Shown: positions 5,455 through 46,838 of the stretch, piece after piece
How positions within the stretch are numbered: the first letter of the stretch is position 1
Layout: every line of letters starts with the position of its first letter
From: Octopus bimaculoides
Taxonomy: Eukaryota
NCBI RefSeq assembly: GCF_001194135.2
Contig: NC_068990.1
Span: forward strand, 30,025,561-30,089,560
Direction: 5' to 3'
Length of the DNA stretch: 64,000 nt
Made by a program: the position numbers and the translations under genes
The notes under the pieces: generated by a model
The model's database searches: none
The model's input: the letters and a program-made list of their open reading frames with translations, nothing else
What the model was told of the DNA's origin: nothing

Positions 5455-5597
5455 ATGGACTACGAAGAAGTGATTGGGACAATTGGAGGATGTGGACTTT
5501 ATCAGAAACTGATGCTAGCTTTCCTCTTTTCTTCATCCATTATGGATGGTTTACAAATTGGAAGCATGATATTTATTGTACCTGACTTAGATTACAG
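5455..5597 (+). CDS. SLC22: SLC22 coding exon 1 ([18 protein letters not shown]...VPDLDY)
   Basis: caccATGG Kozak context; donor AG|GTAAGT, phase 2. An acceptor-like ttctgatag at 5443 suggests a non-coding exon further upstream. Confidence 0.92.
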
Positions 5598-13562: not shown

Positions 13563-16009
13563 CGTGCGCGTGTGCTTGTGCGTGATTGCATGCACATACA
13601 TACGTATGTATATTATATATTGAATTACCCAGAGCATGTAAAGTAGTGAGAATCACATCACTGATGCGTGTATACCAACAGACCTGAAAAATAAATAACG
13701 CTTCATGTTGTTGGATTTTACCTGAGTAAACGTTTCTCACTTTGAGACGATATGTGTTAACAATACACACAATTCAATGACATAGCAGACTCTGAAACAG
13801 CCTGTGTTTTAGTATAATTCAGCCACCTTAAGTGAGAGACAGTACATGGACCTCTGCACCGAGATAAGAATACTTGTTTCTGTCTATAAAATTCAACAAA
13901 CAAAATATTTTCAGATGCATGGTAAGGCCCACAAAACTGAAAGCTACAGAAGGTGTAAGTAAATTGAAATGAAAAATCAAAGAAACTTATTTTGTATATT
14001 TTCCTAGGTGTGCTATTCCTGGCTACGACAACGACACGTATAAAATCCAAAGTGAAATCCATAAAGAACTGATCAACGAATATATTGCAAAAAGTGAGGA
14101 TGAAGGGGAGGTGGTTTATGAAAAATGTTTGATATATTCCAATACCACAGAAAATGGAAATCGAACTACACAGAAGTGCAGCTCTTGGGTGTATGATAAA
14201 ACCAACACGCACACCTCAATCACCACTGAGGTAAGGTTCTTTTGTAGGTCATATCTATCTATCTACCTACCAAGCTATCTATCCATCTATTTAGCTATAT
14301 ATCTATATATTTATCTAGCTAGCTCGCTAGCTATCTAAAACTGCCCGACGAAAAGGAACATGAAACTCTGAGTAACAGCTTTTGTGATGTCTTTGCAACT
14401 TTATTAAAAAAGTATATATATAGGTGTGCGCGTGTGTGCGTGTATAGATAAAGATAGATTGTTCTGTCTGTCTGTCTGTCTATCAATCAACTCAGGTATC
14501 TATCTGTCTATCCATCTCCCTACCTATTTCCTGTCTACTTTTAATTTTACTTCTATGTCCACAAGCCTTTCATACATCCTTAGACTTTTAAAACTTTTAT
14601 ATCCACGAACCATTAAATCCTTTATATCCGTGATCCTTTAATCCGTGATCCTTTATATCTGTGAACCTTTATATCCCCCAACTTATTACAGAAACTTAAA
14701 CCTCTTTCTACTCTGCTCCCTTTTATTCTATTCTATATCGTTTCACTTTATTTTCTTTCGTTTGCCCTCTATATTGTATCTTATCCTGCTTTATTTTATT
14801 TTACTTCTTCTCATCTTCTCTGCCAATTCTACGAACAGCATTTCCCTATTATCTTACTGAAATATATGAGTGTATATATAGAAGTATACATGTATATGTG
14901 CGTATGTATATATATATATACATATATGTGTGCGCATGTTCATATATCATGAGTATGTGTGTGTGTTTGTGTGGGGGTGCGAATGTGGGGAGTGCGTGTG
15001 CATGTGTATAAAGTTGTTAGCTACGACCATGAGAAGCATTCAAGTTGTTTATGGAAGGATGTACAATTTACCTCTTCAAATCTTGAATATTGAATAGTTC
15101 TCAATAATATAAAAGTACAAAAATTTATTATTTTCGCTTTAGTTGTCACAGACGACATTGTGATTAACAACTTTAATAATAAAAACATTGAAATGTTAAA
15201 GATATATGAAAGAAGAATTCAGAACTTGTTACTGCGTGAATCCATACAATTTCATGGTGTCTGCATTTTATAAAATGGGGGCGTTGTAATATTCAACGTT
15301 AGACCAATTTCTTTTCACTCGTTGCTCAATATAATTTTGCTTGCGATTTTGTAACCTTCATAAACAAACATTTCCCTAATGACCATAACTATATTTTATC
15401 TATTATCATTTACAAATTTTATTTTATTATCATTATTATTATTATAATCATTATTATTATTATTATATAACAAGTGCATTGCTGAAATTGGATTAATCCA
15501 ATAATGGAAAATAATGTTTTAAATCAGTCCAAAAATGGTTCCACGCTCATTTTTTTTTTTTTTTTTTTTTGGTGATGAAAGTTTTAAGGAGGTTTTTTGA
15601 AGCGTTTCATTGCCTCTGCACCACCAAATTTTAGTGGCTGTACTCTCGCTGTTCCCTCACCAATGAACAGTGGTCCCTCTGACAGTGGCTCCTTTCCTAT
15701 TAGACAAACTGACTATTAAAGGGGTTTCCAAGAAACAGTGTTTCTACAATTTCAAAACATAAAATTATTATTATCAAAATTATAAAATGTATACATTAAA
15801 TAATTCTCATATTTCTCATTGCAGCTGAATCTCGTTTGCGATAAAGCAATTATGGCAAGGCACACCTTTACATTTTACTTCATGGGCTTCTTTTTTGCTA
15901 TGGTCACTTGTGGAATTTTATCAGACAGGTAAGTTTGGTGTATCATATCTGCACGCTGGTGTGTTTAGTGTTTGCATCATATTTTACATTTTTGCATACT
16001 TCATATATA

Positions 16010-19000: not shown

Positions 19001-21555
19001 TCTTCACAAATTAATGCAAATAAAGAAAGCTAGCCCATCAGATTAGCGGAGCATCAACTGTTCAACTTTAAACATACACAATAAAGTCCTTTATATATAC
19101 AATGTACNNNNNNNNNNNNNNNNNNNNNNNNNNNNNNNNNNNNNNNNNNNNNNNNNNATTCCCCATTCTTAATTTAAGCAAAATAACAAGAAATAACAAG
19201 AAGTGAAGTAAAAATAATATTAAAAATATATGAAAATATAAGCAAATAATATAAAAGAACTCTTCACCAAAGTAATTACACAGAGGGAAATATGGGGGAC
19301 AAAAGATCTGATGATTTTAAGATTCTATGGAATTCATGGATAACTTACTTCATAAGTAATTTCCTAGATTGTTACATGATGTCCTTCCATAACTATTCGC
19401 CAAATCTTCTCAATCACCGCCTCGTTTCCGCTTGTGGATGGCCTACCTGAACATGCCTCACTCACCACTCAGTAGAAGCCATATTTGTAGCAGTTGTACC
19501 ACTCCTTAATCTGAGTTTTCTCCATGGCATCATATCGCCAATGGTTTGTTGAATTGTCTGGATGGTTTGAGCTTGAGTATCACCAAGCTTTTGGTCAAAC
19601 ATGATGCAATATCTCTGCTTGATGCAATTGGTCATCTTACGGGAAAACGAAAATCCGAGTGGGAACTACATATCTGTACTTTGGGCATAACAGCCGAGAA
19701 CTGATGCAGCCTACAGGTACAGGAAGGGCGGTGTCACCTCCCATCCAAAGGATGTTGCCCACGTGACATTAGATTTGGAGGAAAAGACATTAAATTCGTA
19801 TACTTTTTGTGCACACTTCGTGTGTGTGTGGGGGTGGTTAACCAGATGAATTTTAAGTTCATCTCTTCAATCTTTTTCAGATTTGGTCGGAAGAAAGTGA
19901 TAATTGTGTGTTTATTTTTGCAAAGGTCAACCGGAATAGCAACGGCCTTAATCTCCAACATTTATGCCATATATGTGTTACGTTTTATCACTGCTATTGG
20001 TGGTGCTGGATCCTACGTTCCTTCGGTTGTCTTTGGTAAGCAAACAACAATAAAGCACCATAAATGTCCACTTTTAATTTTAAATGCAAGTTGAATTATC
20101 TTCTGTCTTTTTTTCTTCATCGGCTCTCATCCATTAGAGGGAGTCCTTTGAGGGGTTTTAATCATATCAACAACTTTATTTTATCTCATTAGGGAAGAAC
20201 TGTTACGTTGCTCTGAGTGGAAAGTGAGCAGTCTTCATGAGGCAGTATGCCAAGTGACATTGTTGTGTTCGCAAGTTGTAAAATTTGTGTTCTTGTGATC
20301 ACGTGTATGGTGTAGTCTGCACTTTTTGTCAAGGACAGGAAGCTGGAACAAAGAACCAACGTGAAATTTTTCGTTAAACTTGGAAAGTCTGCTACAGAGA
20401 CATTGAGCCCTGCTTCAGGAATCTTACGGTGATGAGGCAATGGGTCGTACGCAAAGTTTCAAGTGGTACGGATGCTTCAAAAGCGGAAGAACGTCCCTGG
20501 GAGACGATGAACGATCAGGAAGACCTCCAACGAACGTTACCCCTGGAAATGTGGAGAAAAGTCATCAGCTTGTAAATGAGGATCGACAGAGGACAACGAA
20601 CCAGGTTTTGAAGCATTTGAGGGAGGACATTCTGCGAAAGCGATCGGATCTATGGAGAACAAAGAATTGGATTCTTAACGATGACAGTGCACCCTGTCAC
20701 CAAGCTCTCCTCACCCTTGAGTTTCCCACCAAAACAACATCGTATCGCCTCCGCACCCGCCATATTCGCCAGATTTTACACCTGCAGGCTTATATTTCTT
20801 CCCCTAAGATGAAAATGCAACTCAAAGGTTGCCGTTTCGACACCATTCTCAAGATCAAGAGAGAAAGGCAGAAAGTCCTCGACTTCCAGGTTGGATACCA
20901 AAACTGGCAGAAACACTGGGACGGGTGTATTGCTGCGCAAGGTGACTATTTCGAAGGAGATGATATTAAAAACTTAGATAAATAAGTTATTTTTTTTATT
21001 AAACATAGATAGTCCGGGAAGATTTTCATACCACCTCGTATGCATACATATTCATGGTGGCATGCATATATACATGCACACACAAAAACACATATAACCC
21101 CCCCACACACACACACACACACACATACATATAGGTTATGAACAAACAGAATAAAATGTAACACGTTAAATGAGTGTGTGGGTATATATATATATGTAAC
21201 TGTATATAATATATATCATAATGATATTTATTCTCCGATTTGAAGCGACATTTTTTTAAAATATAAACAAATGACTGAAAAATGATGAGCTAGCCTCAGG
21301 CAGAATTGAACTCACGAATCGACGCTTTCGCGGCTCCTTGCGAATCCTATTGGCCAAACGTTCGAGCTTCATGGCTGGCTGCCGATAGATTTCTGTAAAA
21401 TATGGATAGTTTATACTGTTCATGCTATATTATAAGCATTATCCTGCGTTTGAGAATAAAATTATTTCCTTATCTTTCAATACATCTCAACGCTTCTAAA
21501 GCAAACTTTGTTTGTTGACTTTCAACGTAAGTTGAATTTAATGCACACACTCACG

Positions 21556-24600: not shown

Positions 24601-27600
24601 NTATATATATGTATATGTAGTAAGTACGTAAGGAGACAAATCGCAAATCCATTCAGGTAGATGGCCCTGCTCAATCTGTAGAAAAGATCTAGGTAGAAAC
24701 TCCATACGATGTACACAGTGTAAGCTATGGACACATAAGAGGTGCAGCAATATCAAAGGAAGGTGAACAGGGAAAATAAATTTTGTGTGTGGAAGGTGCA
24801 CAGGTACAATAAATACTACAAATGTACAGAAAATGGACCCCATCCAATACTAGTGGGGGTAAGGTAGAGGTAGTTGATAGCTTCTATTATCCTCGTAATC
24901 AAGTGAGTAGTGAAAGTGGATGTTCCAACAGCGTAGCTACGAGAAAAAGAATAGGCCGGGCGAAATTCAGAAAGCTCTTACCTCTGTTGGTAACAAAGGG
25001 CCTCTCCGTAAGAATAAAAACATACTGTATGATGCATGTGTGCGAACAGCTATGCTACATGGTAGTGAAACATAAACTGCGACAGTCGAGGACATTCGTA
25101 GGCTTGAAAGAAATGAAGCTAGCATCTTCTCTAGTTGTGCAATGTAAGTGGCATGTACGACAGAATGTTAGCATATTGAGAGATAAGTTGGGCATAAGTG
25201 GCATCAGATGTGGTGTGTAAGGGAGGAAACTGCGATGGTATGGTCATGTGATGTTTATGGACGAGAACAGCTGTGTAAAGAAGTGCCGATATCTAACTGT
25301 GAATGTGTTGTGTGAACGCCCCAGACGATAAGTAGGCTAGTCCAATACATATAAATGGTGGACGTGATAGCTAGTCGTAGAAGCGTCGAGTAGATTTTAT
25401 GAGTTGAGTTGTTGATTTGGTCGGACGATAGCGTTGTTGTTGCGAGCGGTGAATTATTGTACAATGAATTTTTGAAACTGTTATATTGTTGGAATTTTGT
25501 AATTATTGATGAATTTGATTCTTTCTTCCCCATTGTTGGGTGAAGATATGGAAGCTGGCAGTTACGCTATGAGTAAAATCCAAGAGTATTGGAATCTTAA
25601 TAATGGATTTACAAAGGCAATGACCAATCTTAAGGACAATTGGATTTTACTCACACGGTATTGGGATCTTATATGTATACCATTCTGCCTAAACAATGGA
25701 TTTACAAATACAATATCCCTACATTCACTCTCTATTTCCTATCTTAACTAAACTAACTATTGCATAACCATCCTCTCACACCGTCTCCAATGAAGGGATA
25801 TAACAAACATCCTGGAAACAGCTGTAAGACCTTCTATTTATAAATGTTCTATATCATACACAGCCTTGGTTTTTTATCTCATTACGAAAAGTAAATCCTT
25901 ATATACATACATACATACATACATACATACATACATACATACATACATACATACGCACGCGCGCGTATGTGTGTGTATGCGTGTGTGTGTGTATTATAAT
26001 TCCCTCTTTATATCATCATCTTTGTAATTGTTCTCATTTTTCCTCATCATTCTTTCAAATTCTAGCTTCTGAAGTCTCTTCGGTGGACAGTAGAATGAAA
26101 TCTTCCATGGCAATCCAAATAGTGTTTTCCATCGGATACCTGATCCTTTCTCTGCTGACTTATTTTGTGAGGACCCGGAGGACTTTGATGATCATAATAT
26201 CAATCCCGTCACTGATGCTCGGTACCGCCTATATCTGGTAGGTATACATGTATGACGGGTGAATGAATGGATGTGTGTGTGTGGATATATGGGTGTATGA
26301 TTAATGGATCTATGTATGTACGAATGTATGGATGTCTACATATATGTATGGCTGGATGTGTGTATGTATATATGTATGTATTGATGTATGCATGTATGTA
26401 TGGTTGGGTGTATGTATGGCTGGGTGCATGTATCAATGTATGTATGCATATATGTACGTATGAGTAAATGAATATATGGGTGCATGGATTTATATATACG
26501 GACGCACTTAAGTATATGTGGGTGCATATATGTATATATGGATGGATGTATACATGGGTAGATGAATAGATATGTGCGTATGGGTACGTGTGTGTGTATG
26601 TGTTAGTTTGCACGTAAGTCTATATGTATATACAACCCGTTACATAGTTGGCGATTAAACTTGCAACCCTAACAAGTTCGTTTGGGAAGGAGGGTGGGAG
26701 TGGGGTGTGTTTATATTGGACACTTTCCAGGATGAGAAGCAAAACACGTCAAAAGACAGCTGGGGGTGAGTAACCCTTAGTCTTTGTTTAGATATCTCTC
26801 TCGGGGAAGGAAAACTATGATCTAACACCTGTACCTTCGTTTGAATCCAATTATGTAGATTAGTTCTTCTTTTGGGGCAAAAGCATTCGATGTTTAGAGA
26901 CGGGTAACTTAAGAAGCTTCAAATACAGGCTTCACCTGACTTTTAAACATCTTTATTAACATCATAGGTGCAGTCGTAGCTGTGTGGTAAGACGCTTGCT
27001 TCCCAACCACATGGTTCTGGGTTCAGTCTCACTCTATAGCACCTTGAACAAATGTCTCTCTATTTACTTATCTGTGTGTTTGTATGTACGTATGTATGTA
27101 TGTATGTATGTGCATGTGTGTACATATATATATGTGCGTGTGTGTGGTTGTACTTTCCGTTTTCTATTTGCAAGGTTTCTAGACGAATCTCCCCGATGGC
27201 TCCTCAATAAAAAGAGAACAAAATATGCCAACAAGATTCTTAGCAACATCGCCAAACTGAATAAAACAGTTTTGCCTCAAACAGAAATCGTTAACATTTT
27301 CTCATCGAACAATAAAGAAGTAGAAATCTGGAAAATGTTTACCATTCCTCAGCTTCTAAAACGGACTCTAATTTTGATGCTAAACTGGTGAGTGATATTA
27401 CAGTTACCATTTTCTGTGTACTCATTATCTTTCATCGTTTACTTGTTTCAATCATTTGACTGCGACCATGCTGGGGTACCGCCTTGAAAAAACATACTTG
27501 AATTAATTGACCTCAGACTTTTTAAATCCTGGTCCTGATTCCATTGGTTTCTTTCTAACCGTTAAGTTATGGGGACATAGACAAACCAACACAGGTGGTA

Positions 27601-30600
27601 GGGGAACAAACACATAGACAAAGACCCACACATAGCTATATACATATGTGTATGTGTGTGTGTATGTAAATATGATGGGCTTCTTTCAGTTTCCATCTAT
27701 CAAATCCACTCACATGGCTTTGGTCAGCCCATGATTAGGGTAGAAGACACTTGCTCAAAATACCGCGCACTGGGACTGATCCTGGAGCCATGTGGTAGGG
27801 GAGCAAGCTTCTTACCACACAGCCATGCATGTACCTAGATTGGTCATAATGATGCAGATACTCGTGGAAGTTTTCTTGCAAGAAATTCATGTGGAGTCAA
27901 ACTTCAGAGAATATCAAAGATACTAAGTGTGCAAGGATGCTTACATGAAGATGAAATAAAGGAATTCTTTTGAGAGCAAAGCAAAGAATGATAAAATGAG
28001 AAGTAAAACTTAGTTGACCCTTTTGATATCATCAACCCACATGAGAATGTCCCTTTTTGTATCATACAGACTTCCTGTTTGATCTAATTTGAAATTTTCC
28101 ATTCAAATTTCTCGTTAATTTCTGTTCCAGACACCAGATTAATTATGGGCAACTCATTTTATTTAATTTTTCATTATTTTCAAAATTAACTGAAACAAAA
28201 CTAACATTTTGACAAAACCATGGTAACGNNNNNNNNNNNNNNNNNNNNNNNNNNNNNNNNNNNNNNNNNNNNNNNNNNNNNNNNNNNNNNNNNNNNNNNN
28301 NNNNNNNNNNNNNNNNNNNNNNNNNNNNNNNNNNNNNNNNNNNNNNNNNNNNNNNNNNNNNNNNNNNNNNNNNNNNNNNNNNNNNNNNNNNNNNNNNNNN
28401 NNNNNNNNNNNNNNNNNNNNNNNNNNNNNNNNNNNNNNNNNNNNNNNNNNNNNNNNNNNNNNNNNNNNNNNNNNNNNNNNNNNNNNNNNNNNNNNNNNNN
28501 NNNNNNNNTGCTGTGCGGAAGAGGAAGGATATGATGATTTAGGCAGGGCCCTTCATCAAATTTAGAAAACTATTTCACTAAGAATTACCGAAGGCTAACA
28601 AGTGTCAGAGACTACAGACAAATCAGTGAATTCTGCTTATCACAAAATACTTTTTACTCCATGAACATAAACACTCCATGAACATAAACACTCCATGCAC
28701 ACAAACTAAAAAAGGCCACATATACATACAAACCATCTACTCACCATTGATCCAACACACTAAAGTTAACTGGCTCTCATTGGCTAACTCTGTCTCAGTT
28801 CTTAAGTTGTCTTAGTTGTCTATATTAGACAGTTAGTTGTATAACTCTACTTGCTGTTCGCCTCAATGTTCAAATTATCATAATTCTCTCTAAAAAGTTA
28901 CGTAGCCATCTAACCAGTGTTTGGTCTGCAATTTTGGGGCATTTTTGCACATTATATAAAATGTTTGATTTCTTTTATATAGGGTGATTGTGAGCTTGGT
29001 ATATTTCGGCCTTACTCTTTATGTTGGCAAATTATATGGCAATCTCTATATGAATTATTTTTTGACTTCGATTGTCGAGTTTCCAGCCTACATACTGAAC
29101 ATCCTTCTGTTAAATCGTGTTGGAAGAAAAAAATTGCATACTAGCATGATGGTTTTGGCTGGTGTCATTTGTATTGCTGGAATATTTCCCGTCCTGTATG
29201 GCACAAAAGGTAAACAAATCATTATTGTTGTTGTTGTTCTTGTTGTTATTATTATTATTATCATCATCATCATGAAAATTATTATTATTATTGTTGTTGT
29301 TGTTGCTGTTGTTGTTGTTGTTGTTACGAATGGGGGAAAATTACATCCTGATGATTTCACGTTCACACGACGCGAACATCGCTCTCTAGTATCAAATTTT
29401 AAAAAAGGAATAAAAAAATATTGAACACAGGAGAGTGGGGTGATATTGAGACATAGCTGGGTTTGAAACAGTGCTCTACGGGATTCATGCCAGTGGGATT
29501 TCGATTGTCTTGTCAGAATGCTCAGTTTTTTGTAATTGTAGGTACTTGATATCTCGACCTCTACGGTCACGAAGAATTTAAAACAACGACAGAATAAGCC
29601 TGTTTGTAAGATAAATAAGCACTATATTACAGGCGATATACCTGTATTTCTGGCTGCATCACCTCATATATATACAGGTAATCCTCGTGTTGTGAGGACA
29701 GAGAGAAACCAGCCGACAAGCAGGAAACACGCACATTTTACACAGTGAAAGTAGAGGGAGTTGGTGGGAGGAAGAATACAAAGCGGGAACGACAGGCGCG
29801 AACGACACAACCAGGAATGTGAACATCGCAGAGGTAAATGAAAGAACTGCCTGTTATCGAAGTCACATGTTTTCTGTAGTTTCACGTGCTGTGTGTACTG
29901 GTGCATTGTCCTGCAAAAACAAGATATTACGGCTCAGCTTTCCACGGTGTTTCTGCTTCAAATCTTCCTGCAGTTCATCCAACAGAGACATGTAGTATTC
30001 TGTATTGATAGGCGACCCTTTGGCTGGTATTTTATGAGCAGTATTCCCTTTTTGTCCCAGAACACTGAGGCCATAATTTTTCCAGCTCTGGCTCCGAAAT
30101 TTCTTGGAACACAGTGAACTTATGTGACACCAGTCCATTGATTGTTGCTTGGCCTGGAGATCATAATGATGCTAAGTTTCATCCATGGTGGCTAAACGGG
30201 CCATAAAATCAGCCTCTCTCACTGCAAACCTGTCCAAAATCGCCTTTGATGTTGTCGCTCTGATGTGCTTCTGATTTGCGTTCAGGCATTTCGGCAACCA
30301 TTTTGCATAAGCTTACTCAAGTCCAGAATGTTGTGGATAATGTGGCCACACTTTCACGTGAAATCCCCAGAATTTCAGCTATGACTTTAGCTGAAATCTG
30401 GCGGTCCTCGAGAATCATGACGTGTACAGCGTCTTTTATCTGTTTATTATCTTTTTCTTTTTCAGCCCATCGATGGATGTTAACTGCCAGTTCAATATTC
30501 GGCCGTTTGTTTATCACTTCAGCGTTTGGAATTGTGTATTTATACACTTTGGAATTGTATCCAACTTGCATAAGAAACGGGGGTTTTGTCCACCTTTGCA

Positions 30601-32605
30601 CGTTTTGGCGGCAGTGTGGCACCTTACACTCTCAATCTTGTAAGTATTCAGACACGGTATTTGTTTTGTTGTTCGCCCTTTTTGTTAGTCCACCCATCGT
30701 GGGACCAGCACAACTAGTAAAGAGACAGAGCTAGGCTTATCTTTCTATAACAACATACGAATAAGGAAATAGTATCCATCAGACCAGGCACAATGGCTAT
30801 AAACCTTTTGTTACCGTATTTGGGATGAAATACACTGTATTTGTTTCAAAAAATTTAGTAAAATAGCTGAGCCTTTCGTTACTACATTTCTGAAACAAAC
30901 AGCCTATGTTTTAATTAATTTTGAAATAACGAAGAATTTAGTGAAATAACTTAGTCATTATTAAGCTACTACTTCAGGTGGTGAGCTGGAAGAATCATTA
31001 ACAAACTGGAACGAATGCTTAGCAGCATTTTGTCCGTCTTTACATTGAGTTGAAATTCCACTGAGGTCAACTTTGCCTTTTATCCCTTTGGGATCGATAA
31101 AATAAGTACCAGTTAGATATTGGGGTTGATGTAGTTGACCTACCCCAACTTCCCCCGAAATTTCTGGCCTTGTACCAAAATTTGAAACCATTATTAAGCT
31201 ACTGCTTGGAACCTAAAACTGATATGCAATTTTCATGATCACCGTAAAACACAAAGTTTGTTTCATAGGACCAGTTATGGTCTGCAGCAAGTTGGTATCA
31301 AAACGATTTATTTTCAAAATATATTAATCAGCGAAGAATACAAGTTGTCCATTTTCTTTTAATGCCATCTCCCAAATGGGTAAAACTGCAGTTGGTGCCC
31401 GACTTGGATATGTTTTGGCTCAATATCCGGAATAGGGGTTACACAGTCAGTGAATCAAAATGGAAAACGTTGTAGCATTGGAAACGAAAGAAGAAAGAAG
31501 ACACAGTATTTCTGTAGACTAATCTATTATCTTTTGNNNNNNNNNNNNNNNNNNNNNNNNNNNNNNNNNNNNNNNNNNNNNNNNNNNNNNNNNNNNNNNN
31601 NNNNNNNNNNNNNNNNNNNNNNNNNNNNNNNNNNNNNNNNNNNNNNNNNNNNNNNNNNNNNNNNNNNNNNNNNNNNNNNNNNNNNNNNNNNNNNNNNNNN
31701 NNNNNNNNNNNNNNNNNNNNNNNNNNNNNNNNNNNNNNNNNNNNNNNNNNNNNNNNNNNNNNNNNNNNNNNNNNNNNNNNNNNNNNNNNNNNNNNNNNNN
31801 NNNNNNNNNNNNNNNNNNNNNNNNNNNNNNNNNNNNNNNNNNNNNNNNNNNTTCAAAAGAATCAATAATTTTTAATCAGCATTGATTTTTCAAAAATCAA
31901 TAGGACATTTCAATGCAAATTCTTACATGAATGTTATTTTCTACCGGAAGTTTTAAACTTTTCAACTGATTTTCTTGAAATTTTATACACAGATGGAATA
32001 TGCGCTATGCATGGGTTGAGATATTTACCTAGGCTACTCAAGCAAAGTGCAAGATGATTTTTGATTAACTGATTAACGAAATTTGGCCTTAATTGTTGTG
32101 GGGTTAAAATGTTCATCAATTATTTCAGCATTCTCAGGTTGCTGTAACATGTATTTTCTTAACACCTGCACAAATTATCGATTCTAAACGTTGCAATCGA
32201 TATTTGATTCTCACGATCAGTGGGAAACACAGTCGTCAAATTAAGTGCTTTTTCTCTAAATAATTTTTCGTTTACTTTTCAAACTTTTAAGTTGTTGTTT
32301 TTTCATAGCACTCCTTTACACTTCCTATTTTGATGTTTCCATTGATTATATATTTGCAGCTTTCCACTCATCTGACCAAACGATCGTCATTTTCCGATTC
32401 CGCACGCATCTCTTTGTTTTATTGTTTCGTGAATGAATACGCTTATGCCTTCTATTATCTGTCCTATGTCTTGACTTTATTTTTCATCTGAGAGAAATTA
32501 GGTATTGTAATGGGTACTGGGAATACCCCCGCTCCCAGGTATTACCGGGTACCTCAGCNNNNNNNNNNNNNNNNNNNNNNNNNNNNNNNNNNNNNNNNNN
32601 NNNNN

Positions 32606-32637
<32 letters not shown>

Positions 32638-33765
32638 GTCTGCTGAAATTACCACAGGATGGTCATGGTGGGAACAACTTTGACCATAAGTATGCTTGTT
32701 CAGTAATGATCTGGGTCTAATCAACAGCGACAAAATGAACAAAACATATTTTTAAATTGCTGTTTCTTTTTCTGTTTTTTTTTTTTTCAGTCAGATTTGG
32801 TTTCTGGCAAGGTTGGTCGAATAATGCCGATGGTTCTTATGGGAGCACTTTCCATAATCGCGGGGCTATTGACATTGTTGTTACCTGAAACAAACAACCG
32901 GAAAATGATGGATAACTTCAATGATTTGACTAAATCTGGACAGCTGGAGTTAGTGTAGGTGTCACTCATATGATTTAAACATCATGCTCACCATTATCAT
33001 TGTTAGCATTATCATCATCATAATCATCACTATCAACAACATAGTAATTATCATCATTATCATCATCATTATCACCATCATCATCATTATGAACCAAGAA
33101 GCAAGCCTTTAATCGATCATTCGACTTGCTAGAAATTAAACCCAGTCATCTTAAAGAAAAAGGAAGGACACATTGAATATTGAGTGACCATGGTCAGAAA
33201 ACAAAACAGGTTGTTTAAGGCTGGAATGCTTTTGACCCTAGGTTTCCTCAGTCAGAAATAATCAGGGTCACTTGGTGGCAGTTTTTTGTTTGAGTAAGGG
33301 TCCGATCTCATGTCCATTGTGGAACTCTTCGACTTTGGTAACTCTGATGCCGTTAGAATTTCTCTTGTTGTGTTGTAAGTCAATGGCCACTGAGAGAAAG
33401 TGTTAGAAGAACAATGTCCTGGAGAGGAAAGATTAACTGTTGTGGTTAGCAGTGCTGTAGCATGGGCAAGACCAAAGGACAGTTGCTCTGGACTCAAAAT
33501 TCTTAGAGGTACAAGATTCCAAAAGAAAACTTAAATGAAATGGTTGTATGGTAGGAAGTCTGCTTCCCAAGCACATGGTTCCAAGTTCAGTGCCACTGCA
33601 TGACACATTGAGAAAGTGTTTTCTGTTATAGCCTCAGGCCAACCAAAGTCTTATAAGTGGATTTGGTAGATGGAAACTGTATGAAGCCTGTTGTATGTAT
33701 GTACATATAGATAGATATAGATATAGTACATTTTTGTTGATTCTACTTCTATTGGATCTACAATC

Positions 33766-33803
<38 letters not shown>

Positions 33804-34527
33804 CGCGTATGTATGTATATAAATATGTATATATGCATGAATGTATTTATGTATTTGTCCCCCCTCCCCCTGCTTGACAACCAGCATTGGTGTGTATATA
33901 GTCCCATAGCTTAGTGGTTCAGCAAAAGGGCACCAACAGAATATGTAGCAGACTGTAAAAATTCTTTTAGGCAGTGCTCCAGTATGGCCACAGTCTCATG
34001 CTAGAAACAAGTAAAAAATAACCGATAAAAAATTTAAAATAACCCATTTTCCTCACTTACTCAGAATTTGATTGATTTGCCCCCCTTTATTGGCTGCCGT
34101 TGCAATGCCACTGGTGTTTAATGCAGGGCAATGAAGGGTGGACACTGTAGGAGTGAAAAGAGGAGGGGAAAACGAGTGTGTCAGTGATACCTGAATGGAT
34201 ATGAGCTGAAACTAGCTAACTCCCAGGAGCAACAGCAGTGGAAGGGAAGGTTTGCACAAATAACATCATTGATTTAATAAGAATCTTAATCATCATCATC
34301 ATCATCATCACTAGCCGTAGCAATATCGTCCTCCTCCTCATCATCACCATCATCACTATTATCATCATATTTCAAATATTAAACATTATGTTGCTAAATG
34401 TCTGATTGGCTCTTACCTCTTTTTCTTCCTTTCTCTTTTCCCTTCCAGTACTAAAAAGGATGCAATTCTAAAGGAAGAAACTCACCCTATGAAACCGAGA
34501 CAACCTGAAGAGGATATTAAATTTTAA
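5455..34527 (+). CDS. SLC22: SLC22-family (organic cation/carnitine transporter-like, MFS) gene, 10 coding exons, frameshift in exon 8
   Basis: Exons 5455-5597, 14008-14230, 15825-15928, 19881-20035, 26066-26237, 27175-27387, 28983-29209, 30466-30639, 32791-32948, 34449-34527; all GT-AG with matching phases except at the exon-8 lesion. Motifs: four loop cysteines, SDRFGRK, ESPRWL, NRVGRK, ELYPT, LPET. Sum is 1648 nt; 1656 nt (551 aa) if 8 nt are restored. Orthology to a specific SLC22A member is not determinable. Confidence 0.93.
6470..6670 (-). mobile_element. Decayed tRNA-derived SINE
   Basis: Minus-strand head GTAGCCTAATGGTT (A-box-like) and a gttactccagtttcctcagttg core similar to the 7313 copy. 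Confidence 0.55.
7313..7625 (+). mobile_element. tRNA-derived SINE, second family
   Basis: GGCTTAGTGG A-box-like, GAGTTCAATTCC B-box, core gttgctccagtccactcag shared with a decayed copy at about 44430-44620. Confidence 0.75.
7760..7968 (-). mobile_element. tRNA-derived SINE, well-preserved copy
   Basis: Matches the copies at 700-868 and 30977-31189; B-box GAGTTCAAATT. Confidence 0.85.
8167..8446. repeat. Fold-back (inverted-repeat) element, MITE-like
   Basis: Arms 8167-8303 and 8339-8446 are reverse complements (gaaaatgcctgag...aaactccg / cggagttt...ctcaggcattttc). Confidence 0.85.
11494..11556 (+). ncRNA. Minimal type-I hammerhead ribozyme motif, near intact
   Basis: TAATAA-CTGACGA-GATG..CATC-C-GAAA-CTC-G-GAG-T-T-TTATTA: helix I 6 bp, exact core, helix II, quasi-palindromic helix III, GUU triplet. 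Confidence 0.7.
12035..12075 (+). ncRNA. Hammerhead-like motif, degenerate
   Basis: GTTA-CTGAAGA-G-ATTGC-aagagt-GCAAT-GAAA-TAATT-TAAC; C11.1 is missing. Confidence 0.5.
12420..12457 (+). ncRNA. Hammerhead-like motif (U4C core variant)
   Basis: TTGT-CCGACGA-ATG-ggaa-CGT-GAAAC-TGTGA-GTA-ACGG. Confidence 0.45.
14008..14230 (+). CDS. SLC22: SLC22 exon 2, large extracellular loop ([11 protein letters not shown]...[18 protein letters not shown])
   Basis: ttcctag acceptor, GAG|GTAAGG donor, 223 nt, phase 2 to 0. Confidence 0.93.
14341..14378 (+). ncRNA. Hammerhead-like motif, paralog of 12420
   Basis: CTGC-CCGACGA-AAAGGAACAT-GAAAC-TCTGA-GTA-ACAG; downstream flank is also homologous to 12458-12500. 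Confidence 0.4.
15825..15928 (+). CDS. SLC22: SLC22 exon 3 (LNLVCDK...GILSDR)
   Basis: ttgcag acceptor, AG|GTAAGT donor, 104 nt, phase 0 to 2. Confidence 0.93.
17557..17716 (-). mobile_element. tRNA-derived SINE, third family
   Basis: Head GTGGCTGTGTGGTAAGAAGCTT; homologous copies at 27675-27833 (-), 33540-33690 (+), 26965-27060 (+, partial) and 9523-9570 (-, deleted). Confidence 0.8.
17826..18259. repeat. Long fold-back element, arms about 200 bp, 20-nt loop
   Basis: 17826-18027 is the approximate reverse complement of 18048-18259 (gtcaatgcattacggccgtttcaagcgg / ccgcttgaaacggccgtaatgcattgac). Confidence 0.9.
18385..18427 (-). ncRNA. Degenerate hammerhead motif at the end of a probable Penelope-like 3' fragment (about 18430-18800)
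   Basis: CAGT-CGGACGA-T-GGCT..GGTC-GAAA-CTTCGAAA-TC-ACTG. Confidence 0.5.
19310..19680 (-). mobile_element. mariner transposase N-terminal (HTH) fragment
   Basis: Degenerate [17 protein letters not shown]...[18 protein letters not shown]. Confidence 0.7.
19881..20035 (+). CDS. SLC22: SLC22 exon 4 (FGRKKVII...[19 protein letters not shown])
   Basis: tttttcag acceptor, G|GTAAGC donor, 155 nt, phase 2 to 1. Confidence 0.93.
20170..21038 (+). mobile_element. Internally deleted mariner element
   Basis: [48 protein letters not shown]-like region, QGDYFEG; right TIR ...ttttcataccacctcg|TA. Confidence 0.88.
21290..21375 (-). mobile_element. tRNA-like SINE head
   Basis: Minus strand TGGCCAATAGG (A-box-like) and GAGTTCAATTCT (B-box-like). 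Confidence 0.5.
21968..22003 (-). ncRNA. Degenerate hammerhead-like motif
   Basis: CTTT-CGGCTGA-A-GAGC-gtag-GCTC-GAAAC-TT-AAAAG; helix III has collapsed. Confidence 0.35.
22016..22360. repeat. Inverted repeat, arms about 136 bp, spacer about 73 nt
   Basis: 22016-22151 pairs with 22225-22360 (acaagagttaaggaatgg / ccattccttaactcttgt; caggctactcgtcagg / cctgacgagtagcctg). Confidence 0.88.
23365..24387 (-). mobile_element. Penelope-like element reverse transcriptase fragment
   Basis: [55 protein letters not shown]. Confidence 0.9.
24620..25310 (+). mobile_element. RTE-clade LINE 3' fragment with an internal Cys-rich (PHD-like) segment
   Basis: [50 protein letters not shown]. Confidence 0.82.
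25783..25830 (+). ncRNA. Degenerate hammerhead motif with a perfect palindromic helix III
   Basis: GTCT-CCAATGA-AGGGAT..ATCCTG-GAAA-CAGCTG-TA-AGAC. Confidence 0.45.
26066..26237 (+). CDS. SLC22: SLC22 exon 5 ([11 protein letters not shown]...LGTAYIW)
   Basis: ttctag acceptor, TG|GTAGGT donor, 172 nt, phase 1 to 2. Confidence 0.92.
27175..27387 (+). CDS. SLC22: SLC22 exon 6, central cytoplasmic loop ([10 protein letters not shown]...RTLILMLNW)
   Basis: Acceptor tttgcaag (AAG), TG|GTGAGT donor, 213 nt, phase 2 to 2. Confidence 0.9.
28983..29209 (+). CDS. SLC22: SLC22 exon 7 ([10 protein letters not shown]...NLYMNYF...VEFPAY...NRVGRK...YGTK)
   Basis: ttatatag acceptor, G|GTAAAC donor, 227 nt, phase 2 to 1. 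Confidence 0.93.
29865..30445 (-). mobile_element. mariner transposase fragment abutting the exon-8 acceptor
   Basis: [32 protein letters not shown] (first D), [19 protein letters not shown] (second D). Confidence 0.88.
30466..30639 (+). CDS. SLC22: SLC22 exon 8 with internal frameshift (AHRWML...ELYPTCIRN / [20 protein letters not shown])
   Basis: tttttcag acceptor, CTT|GTAAGT donor. The family-like TM11 sequence is in a shifted frame after AAC at 30578. Confidence 0.88.
30977..31189 (+). mobile_element. tRNA-derived SINE, same family as 7760-7968
   Basis: GGTGGTGAGCTGG head to ggccttgtaccaaaatttgaaacc tail. Further decayed copies near 6690-6915, 37818-37890, 43900-44040, 60280-60580, 61490-61680. 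Confidence 0.8.
32791..32948 (+). CDS. SLC22: SLC22 exon 9 ([18 protein letters not shown]...LPETNNRKM...KSGQL)
   Basis: Long poly-T tract then cag|tcag tandem acceptors; phase-2 donor GA|GTTAGT at 32949. Without splicing the frame ends at TAG 32956-32958. Confidence 0.9.
34449..34527 (+). CDS. SLC22: SLC22 terminal coding exon, copy A ([25 protein letters not shown])
   Basis: Strong pyrimidine tract ending ccttccag; phase 2 matches the exon-9 donor; charged C-terminal tail then TAA. Confidence 0.75.
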
Positions 34528-34789
34528 TGTACGTACGTATGTATATACTTAAGTGTGTATGTATGTATGTATGTATGTATTATGTATGTATGTATCTGCG
34601 TACGTGTGTGTATGTGTGTGTATGTATGTACGTATGTGTGTATGTGAGCACACACACACACACAGTTAGACAAACAGACAGGCAGACAGGCAAACAGACA
34701 GACAGATAGATGATTGTAAAAGTGAACACAAGAAATGATACTAATGCACTATAGGATTCTAAAGGCATATGCTTATATGTGTGTGAGCG

Positions 34790-35520
34790 TGTTTTTTCTA
34801 TCCCATCCACCCCTTCTCCACTTCAGTCTGTTGTTACCATTCCTCCAGATCTTCCTCTCTCTGAGACGGAGCACTCCCTCCTCAGTAGGGGTCTGCGCTT
34901 CATCCCTCTCACTCCATCCAGCAATGAATTTCGGACTCGTGCCGATATCCACAGCTTTGTGTGCCGTGTTAGGTTGTGTGCGCTTTTCCACGACACTCCA
35001 CCTGCATCTAATGAAGAGTACTGCTTCACCGACCTGGGCCGCCAACCATCCCAGTGGACGCCAGCTCCTGGCCAATTCCAAGCAGTCGATCTTTTTGCGG
35101 GCGCCTGCCAGCGCGCTGTGGACCGGTTTAATTTTTCCCTGTCATCTGAACATCTCCCCAGCCAAACTCTCGGCCCTTCGAAACCTCCGACGCCGCACTG
35201 ACATCATCATACAACTGGCCGACAAAGGTGGAGCCGTGGTGGTATGGCGTAGACCTCTACAAGGTGGAAGCTCTCCGCCAACTTCAAGGCAACTTCTACT
35301 GCCCTACTGCCCTCTGCCCTCACGCCCAGCTACGAAGAGACTTTGTCCTCCACTATCCCTGACCTCATCTCCTCCTCCCGTCTCCTCCTACCGCTTCCAA
35401 CCTCATTGTTCGCACCCCTCGCACCACCACAATTTACTTCCTCCCCAAAATCCACAAACCTAACAACCCTGGCCCCTCCATCGTCTCCGCCTGCAACAGC
35501 TCCACCGAAATCATCTCCTC
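34790..35520 (+). mobile_element. Penelope-like element fragment (pre-RT region and start of RT)
   Basis: SLLSRGLRFIP, IIIQLADKGGAVVVW, IYFLPKIHKP, IVSA. Confidence 0.85.
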
Positions 35521-35625
35521 CTCATCATCATCACTATTATCATCATATTTCAAATATTAAACATTATTTTTCTAAATGTCTGATTGGCTCTTTCCTCTTT
35601 TCCTTTCTTTCTTTTTCCCTTCCAG

Positions 35626-35704
35626 TACTAAAAAGGATGCAATTCTAAAGGAAGAAACTCACCCTATGAAACCGAGACAACCTGAAGAGGATATAAACTC
35701 TTAA
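35626..35704 (+). CDS. SLC22: SLC22 terminal coding exon, duplicated copy B (...PEEDINS*)
   Basis: Near-identical acceptor and coding sequence to 34449-34527; differs in the last codons. Confidence 0.55.
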
Positions 35705-35887
35705 TGTACGTATGTATGTATATACTTATGCATGTATGTATGTATATATGTATGTATGTGAGCACACGCACACAGATGGACAGAAAGACTGACTGACTGA
35801 TAGATAGATAGATAGACAGATGGATAGATCATAAAAGTAAACACAAGAAATGATACTAATGTACTACAGGATTGTAAAGGCATATGC

Positions 35888-44800: not shown

Positions 44801-46838
44801 GAAAGAATTTGCTCTGGTGAGGTGTGCCAATTGTCTTCATCATCAATGGTGGTGGTGGTGGTGGGGAACTAGTCATGGCCTCTTGGAGGAGGGTGAATAT
44901 TAAACAACTTCTATAAAATTTTAAACCTTTGTAACAGTTTGGTTTTAGTAAATCAATCACCTGAATATGTTTGTGCATCTGTAAATATATATATATACAC
45001 ACATTCACAAGTAAAGATGTAAGCACAAACATACAAAAATACACACACAAATATATATATATATACATACATACATAGACACACATGTAAGTCAATCCCC
45101 AAGAATGTTTATGTACACACACGCACACACACACGTTAATATTTAGCAAAAGCAACTGAGTGACTTGAGAGCCGAGAATTTCATGCATTAGTTTTAAGAG
45201 CACTAACACACAAAACTCTTGGCTCTCGAGTCACTCAGTAACTTCTGCTAAATAGACATATACACACCTGCATGATAGCATGTATACATAAGTACACTTG
45301 TTCATGCGCATACATACACGTAACTGTTTTCTATATGTACAGATGGCAGCTCAAAATTGGCAAGCCATAAGATAAACTGCAACAAGCAGGAATTATTGCA
45401 TGCATACATGCAAGTGTGCACCGGATGAACGTAGAGTGAAGATGTGTTAGTGGGAATGGCAGGATTGAATAGCAAGGAGTTAGGAGAAGCCCAAAAGAAA
45501 TAAAAGCAGGTATAAGAGGGTAGTGGTGATGATGGTGGTGGCAGTGGTAGTAGTTAAGATTCAAACATTATTATTATTATTATTATTATTATTATGAAAT
45601 TAGTGGCTAAAGGAGAGGTTTAAATAAATAAAAAGCTAAGCCGTTTCCCCCGATTCCAAGGACACATAGGATCCATCCTTCTCTTCAGTTCTTATATTGT
45701 AATATTGAGTAATAAGGTTCCTCTTGGATGGGCTGAGAGATTGGAATGGCTGAAGGGGGAGGGTAAGAGATCAACTTGGAAAGATATTAAAAAGTCTTAA
45801 AAATAAAATTTCTTATATTGAATGGCAATAGTATTTTGGGCAGGAGTGGGGTGGGGTTACACGTACAAGGGGGTTTCCCTCTCACTTCAGGACCTAGCCA
45901 GTGTTTATTGTCTTGATCCCAGTAAATGTGAAAGATTAAGTCCACTCTGTTAGGGTTTGAACTCACAAAGTAAAGGGACTTTGACTAAATACAACATTTG
46001 ATCCAAGACTATGATTTCTTTGACTGCAATAATGAAGCTGAGGGCTTAAAGAGAGTTATAATAGATTTGTTAGAGACATCAGATCATTGAAACAACATAT
46101 GGCTGGACCATAACAGCTGTTTCTTTTAATTGCCATGAGGACAACAAAAACATAAACACTATTGCATCGTAGAGATTAAGACAGACAATGGACAGTGTAG
46201 TGGCCAAACTAAAAATTGATACAAAAACAGGATAAAAAACAACAACTAAAGAAATACCAACAGACATTAGAAGATATGGAAGGTATTGTGTGATTAACTG
46301 AGGAGTAAAATTAATAGAATTTACTCCAGGAAAAGACTGGGAGGTGTGGGGAGAGAATGGAAATAGTGTGAGGTGTGGGGAGAGAAGGGAAAGTAAATTA
46401 ATTCAATTAGTTTCTGTCCTTTTTTTTTTTTTAATTTTTTAAAAAACTCAAAATCTAAAGGAACAAAATCTGAAACTGCGATGTATCTCATTGGAACGAT
46501 CTAAAAGGTTTTTAACAGTCATAAAAGAGGGGGGGAAGAGAAGGAGAGGGAGATGAAACAGTGTTTGTCTCTTTACAGAGTGAGGTGTGTGTGTATTTGT
46601 AAGAGGAAGATCCAATGGAAGAGAGAAAGAAAGAGAGGTGAAACAGAAATGTGTGTGTGTGTATTTCATCATGTAATTGCTCCAGTATGAGTGATAAACA
46701 TTGAAAGGTGGTTAGGAAGAAATGGCAGGTCTTAAATGTCCAGTTCTCTTCTTGCTGTTATTCCACAAAACGTGATGCTCTTTTTCTTTAACCAACCAAG
46801 AACACACAGGTTGCAAGTTCAACAGTCTACCACAAACT

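Follow-up and report, generated by a model that had tools for sequence, protein, structure and literature searches.

The window, a stretch of 64,000 nucleotides of Octopus bimaculoides (GCA_001194135.2, chromosome CM046610.1, ~30.03-30.09 Mb), contains an SLC22/organic-cation-transporter (OCT)-like gene that lacks 8 nt in exon 8, at the start of TM11. The deletion is found in both DNA and RNA, and in the transcript carrying it exon 9 begins at the first of two possible acceptors. We regard the gene as probably (roughly 0.6) a young pseudogene: an unprocessed duplicate, one of a tandem array of such transporter genes, that lost its function recently and is still transcribed.

The gene model and tblastn of homologues define 10 exons on the + strand, from 5455 to 34527. 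In the gene model all nine introns are GT-AG and every exon other than exon 8 is open. The features of the locus are:

5455-5597, + strand: exon 1, with the ATG at 5455 and TM1 (gene model, tblastn of homologues)
14008-14230, + strand: exon 2, large extracellular loop (gene model, tblastn)
15825-15928, + strand: exon 3 (gene model, tblastn)
19881-20035, + strand: exon 4 (gene model, tblastn)
26066-26237, + strand: exon 5 (gene model, tblastn)
27175-27387, + strand: exon 6 (gene model, tblastn)
28983-29209, + strand: exon 7 (gene model, tblastn)
30466-30639, + strand: exon 8, with TM10, loop and TM11, bearing the lesion (sequence, gene model, X13 RNA contig over 30472-30639)
30578/30579, + strand: deletion junction, 8 nt gone between AAC and GGGGG, frame +1 (DNA alignment, contigs)
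30640-32790, + strand: intron 8 (GT..AG), with both assembly gaps and an (AT)n run (30639 to 32791 joint in contigs of four RNA runs)
32791-32954, + strand: exon 9 as spliced in RNA, behind the first AG (32789-32790), donor GTAGGT at 32955 (X13 RNA contig)
32793-32794, + strand: second AG, lying in the Ser-Asp codons TCA GAT; an exon start at 32795 would restore the frame (sequence; unused in RNA contigs)
32886-32888, + strand: premature TGA, codon 503, 66 nt ahead of the exon 9/10 junction (frame of the observed splice)
34449-34527, + strand: exon 10a, the likely terminal exon (tblastn of homologues, gene model)
35626-35704, + strand: exon 10b, ending in EEDINS and a stop, a duplicate terminal exon (tblastn, comparison with P0021)

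All three conceptual products of the gene matched Pfam Sugar_tr (PF00083; 96-106 bits, gathering cut-off 22.3) and MFS_1 (PF07690; 77-87 bits, gathering cut-off 33.4). When the read-through sequence of the gene was used as query, the alignment to OCTN2 (SLC22A5, PDB 9pdq) was colinear and full-length (query residues 2-520 versus 3-525, E = 2e-67). A Pfam search of two long intronic ORFs (20407-20982 and 24813-25217) returned no match. An upstream paralog with an intact exon 8 (L001, 17358-17543) ends ~2 kb ahead of the window, and at least seven copies of the family are present on one O. sinensis chromosome. Across the span of the window gene, the NCBI record has the gene of this upstream paralog alone. 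Exon 10b is 100% identical to the C-terminal end that NCBI gives for isoform X1 of the paralog (P0021). This isoform appears to leap over the whole window gene and to end in the terminal exon beyond it.

The frame of exon 8 breaks directly after ...ELYPTCIRN (AAC at 30576-30578). A single extra G (30579) precedes GGG GTT TTG TCC..., and this downstream family frame reaches 30639 in phase 0 and connects to the first acceptor, with exon 9 starting at 32791. A sequence-only reading of this DNA had placed a frameshift in TM11 after ...PTCIRN, with about 8 nt lost. DNA alignment with the upstream tandem paralog bore this out, showing one gap of exactly 8 nt, GGTGCATT, and the same gap was seen against a closer copy in reads. 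The missing nucleotides can be placed in three ways, as GGTGCATT, GTGCATTG or TGCATTGG, with a 2-nt GG microhomology. Among the 11 aligned homologues that cover the deletion site, 10 have RNGALG and one has RNAALG. The TM10-TM11 motif ELYPTxxRNxGxGxxSxxxRxG is kept by the other aligned homologues covering it and is broken in the window copy. Besides the 8-nt deletion no second lesion was found in the window gene.

The reference assembly is a 2015 draft built from short reads, rich in gaps and since then only re-scaffolded with Hi-C. An assembly or consensus error, with the 8 nt kept in the true locus sequence, had been suggested at the G5/T4 run. We initially accepted this explanation on the basis of Logan DNA contigs of X1, X3, X5, X7, X8 and X14, none of which spans the junction as it is in the window; the contigs show GGTGCATT ahead of 30579 instead. 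Over all 11 DNA runs (eight samples), likewise, no contig spans the junction in its window form. It was dropped when independent data agreed with the window. A spliced RNA contig of X13 (361 nt, depth 24.4) agrees with the window over 30472-30639 and 32791-32954 (332 nt in total) without a single difference or gap, and continues for another 29 nt. In addition, two raw DNA reads of X24, a 2026 sample from another study, are at least 99% alike, and the depth profile places both uninterrupted across 30579. The raw reads amounted to ~0.7x per sample, and these two clear deletion reads came from one of three samples; the proposed check of raw genomic reads thus confirmed the deletion. Contigs prove presence, not absence, and contig simplification usually drops the less-covered branch of a short bubble. 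The deleted junction is therefore probably missing from the Logan DNA contigs because its short, less-covered branch was popped, and we attribute the contigs that contradict the junction to other copies. The assembly gaps (31537-31851 and 32559-32605) both lie within intron 8 and are irrelevant to the exons, because RNA contigs connect 30639 straight to 32791; for the same reason, no exon is hidden by a gap, and exons 8 and 9 belong to one transcript. An assembly error as the origin of the frameshift is accordingly highly improbable.

The joint from 30639 to 32791 (GT..AG) was the only one seen in the contigs of the four RNA runs, which were X13, carrying the deleted form, and X25, X26 and X27; deleted and intact forms are spliced identically here. 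With this first acceptor, the shifted frame is predicted to run into the TGA at 32886-32888 and to give a 502-aa product without TM11 and TM12, and the early stop in exon 9 expected by the sequence-only reading was thus confirmed. The two AGs (32789-32790 and 32793-32794) are spaced by 4 nt and share one long polypyrimidine tract. Use of the second (exon start 32795) would restore the frame and give a stop-free product of 549 aa, computed with exon 9 as 32791-32954 and exon 10 as 34449-34527, in which a 21-residue segment takes the place of TM11; the length given earlier was 547 aa.

If a minority of deletion transcripts used this distal AG and escaped decay, a 549-aa SLC22 protein of altered function could be made. 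We consider both this scenario and the more general view of the gene as a splice-rescued variant very unlikely. The frame arithmetic of the proposed rescue holds and the paired AGs are suitably placed, but the deletion-bearing RNA contig is spliced to 32791, and acceptor 32795 was used in no contig of the four RNA runs, a type of data that rare isoforms would escape. The comparison of the two junctions that had been proposed, carried out on these contigs, therefore yielded 32791 alone. Moreover, the segment that would replace TM11 has a lower hydrophobicity (mean Kyte-Doolittle -0.09 versus 0.59), and the portion of the motif aligned to TM11 of OCTN2, the conserved G-x-x-S-x-x-x-R-x-G-G, is lost in it. 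The Ser-Asp codons TCA GAT are kept by every aligned homologue covering exon 9 except a cuttlefish protein, and the upstream paralog shares the first 40 nt of exon 9 with the window gene, so the second AG did not evolve with the lesion. An exact look-up in the protein collection found neither the 502-aa nor the 549-aa product. Gene predictors had been expected to pick the second acceptor and so to mask the lesion. This was not borne out, as neither product is in the collection and NCBI has only the upstream paralog's gene at this position. Were the rescue true, TM11 with the conserved Arg of the relatives (S-x-x-x-R-x-G-G motif) would be swapped for an unrelated 21-residue segment, and the locus would serve as a natural experiment on how a frameshift, combined with a tandem acceptor already in place, gives rise to a new transporter variant.

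Ribosomal frameshifting at the G5/T4 run, by which translation would return to the family frame, has a negligible probability. In the zero frame the deletion creates G GGU UUU (30581-30587), a heptamer of the -1 slippery type in its form. Slippage by -1 at this heptamer was rejected, since it leads into the third frame whereas the family frame requires +1. Three residues of the motif would be absent even if the frame were restored.

An intact and expressed copy of the gene exists. In contigs the intact form reads ...ACTTGTATAAGAAACGGTGCATT, followed by a sequence identical to the window over 30579-30648. It was found in DNA contigs of all eight samples examined (four studies) and in RNA contigs of X25-X27 (depth 34-78), the latter with two differences in exon 9. 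Overall the intact copy is ~97% identical: its exon 8, and exon 9 as far as it was sampled, diverge by ~3%, and its intron differs from that of the window by indels as well. The upstream paralog's exon 8 differs from the intact copy. The locus of the intact copy was not found in the window or in the 21.5 kb upstream of it (86 kb in all), P0009 had no record entry, and the protein collection has no record of a protein of the intact form.

The main rival to the young pseudogene is a segregating null allele. The gene would then be a functional one, represented in the window by one haplotype and in the reads by the other, intact allele of the same locus. The identity over 30579-30648 is letter for letter, each RNA run contains one form only (deleted in X13, intact in X25-X27, never both), as would be the case with alleles in different animals, and the lack of a second locus in the 86 kb searched, the missing protein entry and a dN/dS that is still low point in the same direction. 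However, contigs of window-type and alternative-type introns occur at ~1:1 depth in all seven DNA samples, from four studies, in which both were measured, which is unlikely for alleles unless the samples were pooled or came from the same animal. A divergence of ~3% with intron indels is also high for alleles, and the reads with the deletion come from an unrelated 2026 sample. Taken together, we consider a null allele possible but doubtful, and the intact form probably represents a separate locus.

Relaxed constraint would be expected to raise dN/dS to near 1 and to add further lesions. Against O. sinensis P0001, the window gene as a whole gave a dN/dS of 0.325 and its part downstream of the lesion one of 0.216; private substitutions were no commoner than in intact paralogs. 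Relaxed constraint was thus rejected, as no sign of it was seen in dN/dS (0.2-0.3) or private substitutions. Since dN/dS is low and no other lesion is present, the 8-nt break appears to be young, and a recent lesion would in turn explain the absence of relaxation. The dN/dS comparison that had been called for is consistent with a young null, and the earlier proposal of a young pseudogene or null allele is now strengthened by the presence of the deletion in RNA and raw genomic reads, the lack of other lesions and the low dN/dS.

For the young pseudogene we propose the following course. An 8-bp deletion, flanked by the 2-nt GG microhomology that probably underlies it, took out codons 2-4 of RNGALG, where TM11 begins, and thereby shifted the frame. 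Splicing of the transcript is normal, with exon 8 joined to exon 9 at 32791, and translation would proceed through 52 out-of-frame codons before stopping at the TGA at 32886-32888. Without TM11 and TM12, the resulting 502-aa product could not form a 12-helix MFS transporter, and the gene has probably lost its function. The ~97% identical intact copy, expressed from elsewhere, would remain.

The value of these results is mostly practical. The O. bimaculoides reference is right about this frameshift, so the appropriate annotation for the locus is transcribed pseudogene or null allele; the gene should not be 'repaired' or modelled with the downstream acceptor. A close intact relative is either missing from the searched part of the assembly or was not found there. 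A caution on method also follows, as simplified run contigs gave a real deletion the look of an assembly error. In terms of biology, the locus is a further example of a tandem transporter family that turns over by birth and death of its genes.

The closest solved structure is human OCTN2 (SLC22A5; PDB 9pdq), of the SLC22 family of OCT, OCTN and OAT transporters. Like SLC22 members, the window gene encodes a large loop between TM1 and TM2, whereas its identity to vertebrate members is only ~30%. The motif ELYPT..RN.G.G..S...R.G is whole in intact relatives, while the window copy lacks 8 nt inside it and, unlike SLC22 transporters, has no open frame through TM11-TM12. Much closer are the 'organic cation transporter protein-like' arrays of octopuses (P0001-P0007, XP proteins, in O. 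sinensis; P0009, P0020 and P0021 in O. bimaculoides), with which the window copy shares 82-88% protein identity, the same 10-exon structure and the same chromosome neighbourhood. All aligned homologues that cover the site have RN[GA]ALG, and the full-length ones (533-553 aa) have an intact frame, so that the loss of 8 nt is seen in the window copy only. With its pair of AGs, separated by 4 nt and served by a single polypyrimidine tract, the locus resembles tandem alternative acceptors (NAGNAG, delta-4). In contrast to these systems, its distal AG is unused in the contigs of the four RNA runs and is a by-product of conserved codons. The locus is most similar to transcribed unprocessed pseudogenes, being an intron-bearing tandem duplicate next to its paralogs, with one disabling frameshift that leads to a premature stop, and still spliced; compared to typical unprocessed pseudogenes it is very young, with one lesion and a dN/dS of 0.2-0.3.

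The window gene, a 10-exon SLC22/OCT-like gene on the + strand, was modelled by combining open stretches and splice sites with homologues placed by tblastn, and its introns are GT-AG throughout.

Exons of the window gene (window coordinates; each from open stretches, splice sites and tblastn)
Exon 1: 5455-5597, + strand
Exon 2: 14008-14230, + strand
Exon 3: 15825-15928, + strand
Exon 4: 19881-20035, + strand
Exon 5: 26066-26237, + strand
Exon 6: 27175-27387, + strand
Exon 7: 28983-29209, + strand
Exon 8: 30466-30639, + strand
Exon 9: 32791-32954, + strand
Exon 10: 34449-34527, + strand

The upstream frame of exon 8 reads ...ELYPTCIRN, and its last codon (AAC, 30576-78) is followed directly by five Gs (30579-83, the G5 run) and four Ts (30584-87, the T4 run). 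A family-like frame resumes one base off, at GGG 30580-82. It reaches the exon end (30639) in phase 0, and acceptor 1 (exon 9 from 32791) continues it in the correct exon-9 frame. At this site 10 of the 11 aligned homologues covering it have RNGALG and one has RNAALG. When aligned with exon 8 of the upstream tandem paralog, the window exon shows a single 8-nt gap, GGTGCATT, for which three equivalent placements are possible, indicating a 2-nt GG microhomology. With acceptor 1 the shifted frame ends after 502 aa at TGA 32886-88, which lies 66 nt short of the junction between exons 9 and 10, and acceptor 2, an AG 4 nt downstream (exon 9 from 32795), brings the frame back. The sequence-only reading had described the frameshift, the early stop and the restored frame correctly; its restored product is open with TM11 replaced by a 21-residue segment, as it stated, but is 549 aa long, not 547.

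The window is identical at 45,704 of 45,704 overlapping positions to a stretch (L001) of O. bimaculoides GCA_001194135.2, chromosome CM046610.1, where window position x corresponds to L001 position x + 21504. This assembly is a 2015 short-read draft re-scaffolded with Hi-C (PMC9068888), which explains the numerous N gaps in the window. An assembly error, with the 8 nt truly there, was first suggested by the Logan DNA contigs, as none from the 2015 sample or other samples spans the junction as written in the window. One contig on about 30525-30580 has 2 differences and continues TGCATTGGGGGTT; a second reads ...ACTTGTATAAGAAACGGTGCATT and then matches 30579-30648 exactly. However, a 361-nt contig of the 2015 RNA run X13 (depth 24.4), spliced to exon 9, crosses the junction without a gap or a difference from the window. 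For the 2026 raw genomic data, about 0.7x per run was read, and two reads from run X24, at ≥99% likeness, pass straight across 30579 (starts near 30519 and 30561, ends past 30660, placed from the depth profile); one further X24 read is clipped at 30580. In run X23, depth bins only weakly place one read apparently from 30576 into the window-type intron and another, 30579-30652, in an intact copy with an alternative intron. From the X13 contig and the X24 reads it follows that the 8-bp deletion is real and present in both DNA and RNA; the gene that carries it belongs to a tandem SLC22-like family. The assembly error, one of the options raised earlier, was rejected as highly unlikely. The best explanation for the deletion's absence from DNA contigs is graph simplification, in which the less-covered branch of a short bubble is dropped; the alternative branch is 4-6 times deeper and common to several paralogs. 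Run contigs are evidence of presence, not absence, and inferring absence from simplified contigs calls for caution.

At 30519 all DNA contigs and both raw reads covering it (90% likeness threshold) have G instead of the window's T (Ser to Ala, FITSAF to FITAAF). The X13 contig shares the T, so the G probably comes from paralogs and is not an error. Just upstream of exon 8, 30350-30430 has DNA contig depth 10-40 times the local level with many variants, and is a dispersed repeat abutting the exon.

Contigs of four RNA runs (X13, X25, X26 and X27) join 30639 directly to 32791 (GT..AG), and the X13 one agrees with the window at every position it covers in exon 8 (30472-30639) and in exon 9 (32791-32954). 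Both flagged gaps (31537-31851 and 32559-32605) lie inside intron 8; they conceal no exon, and the scaffold joins the right exons. Splice rescue through acceptor 2 is sound in its frame arithmetic, but the deletion-bearing X13 contig uses 30639->32791, as do intact-form contigs in X25, X26 and X27, and 32795 is never used in the contigs of these four runs. Moreover, the second AG belongs to the Ser-Asp codons TCA GAT that open exon 9 in all aligned homologues covering this exon except the cuttlefish protein, and the upstream paralog shares the initial 40 nt of this exon without change. This AG is ancestral and incidental. In the hypothetical rescue, the new segment is also less hydrophobic than native TM11 (mean Kyte-Doolittle -0.09 vs 0.59), and the conserved S-x-x-x-R-x-G-G part, which aligns to OCTN2 TM11, is lost. 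In this family the residue at that Arg position (rat OCT1 has Asp475, whereas OATs and OCTNs have Arg) is a determinant of substrate charge. Splice rescue is very unlikely. The window gene is transcribed and spliced normally, and its translation then stops early. Recoding is extremely unlikely.

Within intron 8, 31040-31215 draws RNA contig depths in thousands, with many partial matches and odd joints, and is a highly repeated, expressed element; the (AT)n run 32606-32637 likewise draws very high depth.

An intact form, about 97% identical to the window (divergence roughly 3%), has T30569 and GGTGCATT followed by identity through 30648. It was found in DNA contigs of 8/8 samples examined (four studies) and in RNA of X15, X25, X26 and X27, with contig depth 34-78 in X25-27. 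Compared with the window it has 5 changed positions in 30430-30580, 2 (including G32829A) within the initial 73 nt of exon 9, and indels just inside intron 8, where the alternative intron has a 10-nt insertion; one unbranched X14 contig ties GGTGCATT to this intron. The upstream paralog reads GGGGGTTATGTCTACC at the site and was ruled out as its source. Both intron types are present in X5, and in all seven samples with a measurement of each type their contigs were near-equal in depth.

Depth of intron contigs by sequencing run
X7: window-type 9.6, alternative-type 9.3
X3: window-type 13.4, alternative-type 17.1
X1: window-type 36.5, alternative-type 39.2
X2: window-type 44.6, alternative-type 50.3
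X4: window-type 35.5, alternative-type 47.4
X10: window-type 57.7, alternative-type 69.7
X11: window-type 68.5, alternative-type 68.9

Since seven heterozygotes out of seven would be unlikely for alleles, two loci are favoured, provided that the samples are different, unpooled animals. The main rival, a segregating null allele, would fit the failure to find the intact copy in the 86 kb of assembly available, where it may be collapsed, or it may be placed elsewhere; given the near-equal depths, we consider this rival doubtful, though far from negligible.

The young pseudogene or null allele proposed from sequence holds up, with the deletion in DNA and RNA and no further disruption in any other exon. 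Nei-Gojobori dN/dS, also named earlier as a check, was 0.325 (dS 0.196) against the O. sinensis homologue P0001, and 0.216 over the 100 codons that follow the lesion, taken in the family frame. At columns that are otherwise invariant, the gene carries 10 private substitutions (G172R, W246R and N350Y among them), compared to 0-14 in intact paralogs. The lack of other lesions, these ratios and a substitution count within the paralog range indicate that the frame broke recently compared with the split from O. sinensis. We consider a young unprocessed pseudogene the most likely reading (probability roughly 0.6).

The finding is an ordinary one, of use mainly for annotation. Gene predictors had been expected to hide the lesion by choosing acceptor 2; instead, the window gene was skipped. 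Neither the 502-aa nor the 549-aa conceptual product is in the protein collection, and no protein on record is >88% identical to the window gene. Across L001 a single gene is called, that of the upstream paralog (proteins P0020/P0021). Its span, L001 10001-57208, takes in all of the window gene, and its end coincides exactly with that of a duplicate terminal exon (window 35626-35704) matching the P0021 C-terminus at 100%. Isoform X1 of this paralog thus seems to skip some 37 kb across the window gene, and its model may be chimeric. The terminal-exon region is duplicated in tandem (34337-34580 and 35515-35757, about 91% identity, spacing 1177-1178 nt), giving two possible last exons, ..EEDIKF* and ..EEDINS*. 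The upstream paralog itself (L001 1537-19647, window -19967 to -1857) has an intact exon 8 with AAGAAACGGTGCATTGG at L001 17468; its annotated protein is only 327 aa, probably because gaps interrupt its 5' part. An intronic ORF fragment at 24632-24763 has PHD-finger and C1 zinc-finger Pfam matches (E = 2e-6), and Pfam gave nothing for two long ORFs nearby (24813-25217 and 20407-20982); all three are probably transposon remnants.

In Pfam, the conceptual protein of the window gene passes the Sugar_tr and MFS_1 cut-offs. Its identity to Octopus 'organic cation transporter protein-like' proteins is 82-88%, and a single O. sinensis chromosome holds at least seven of these. Over its full length it aligns with human OCTN2 (SLC22A5, PDB 9pdq; E = 2e-67).
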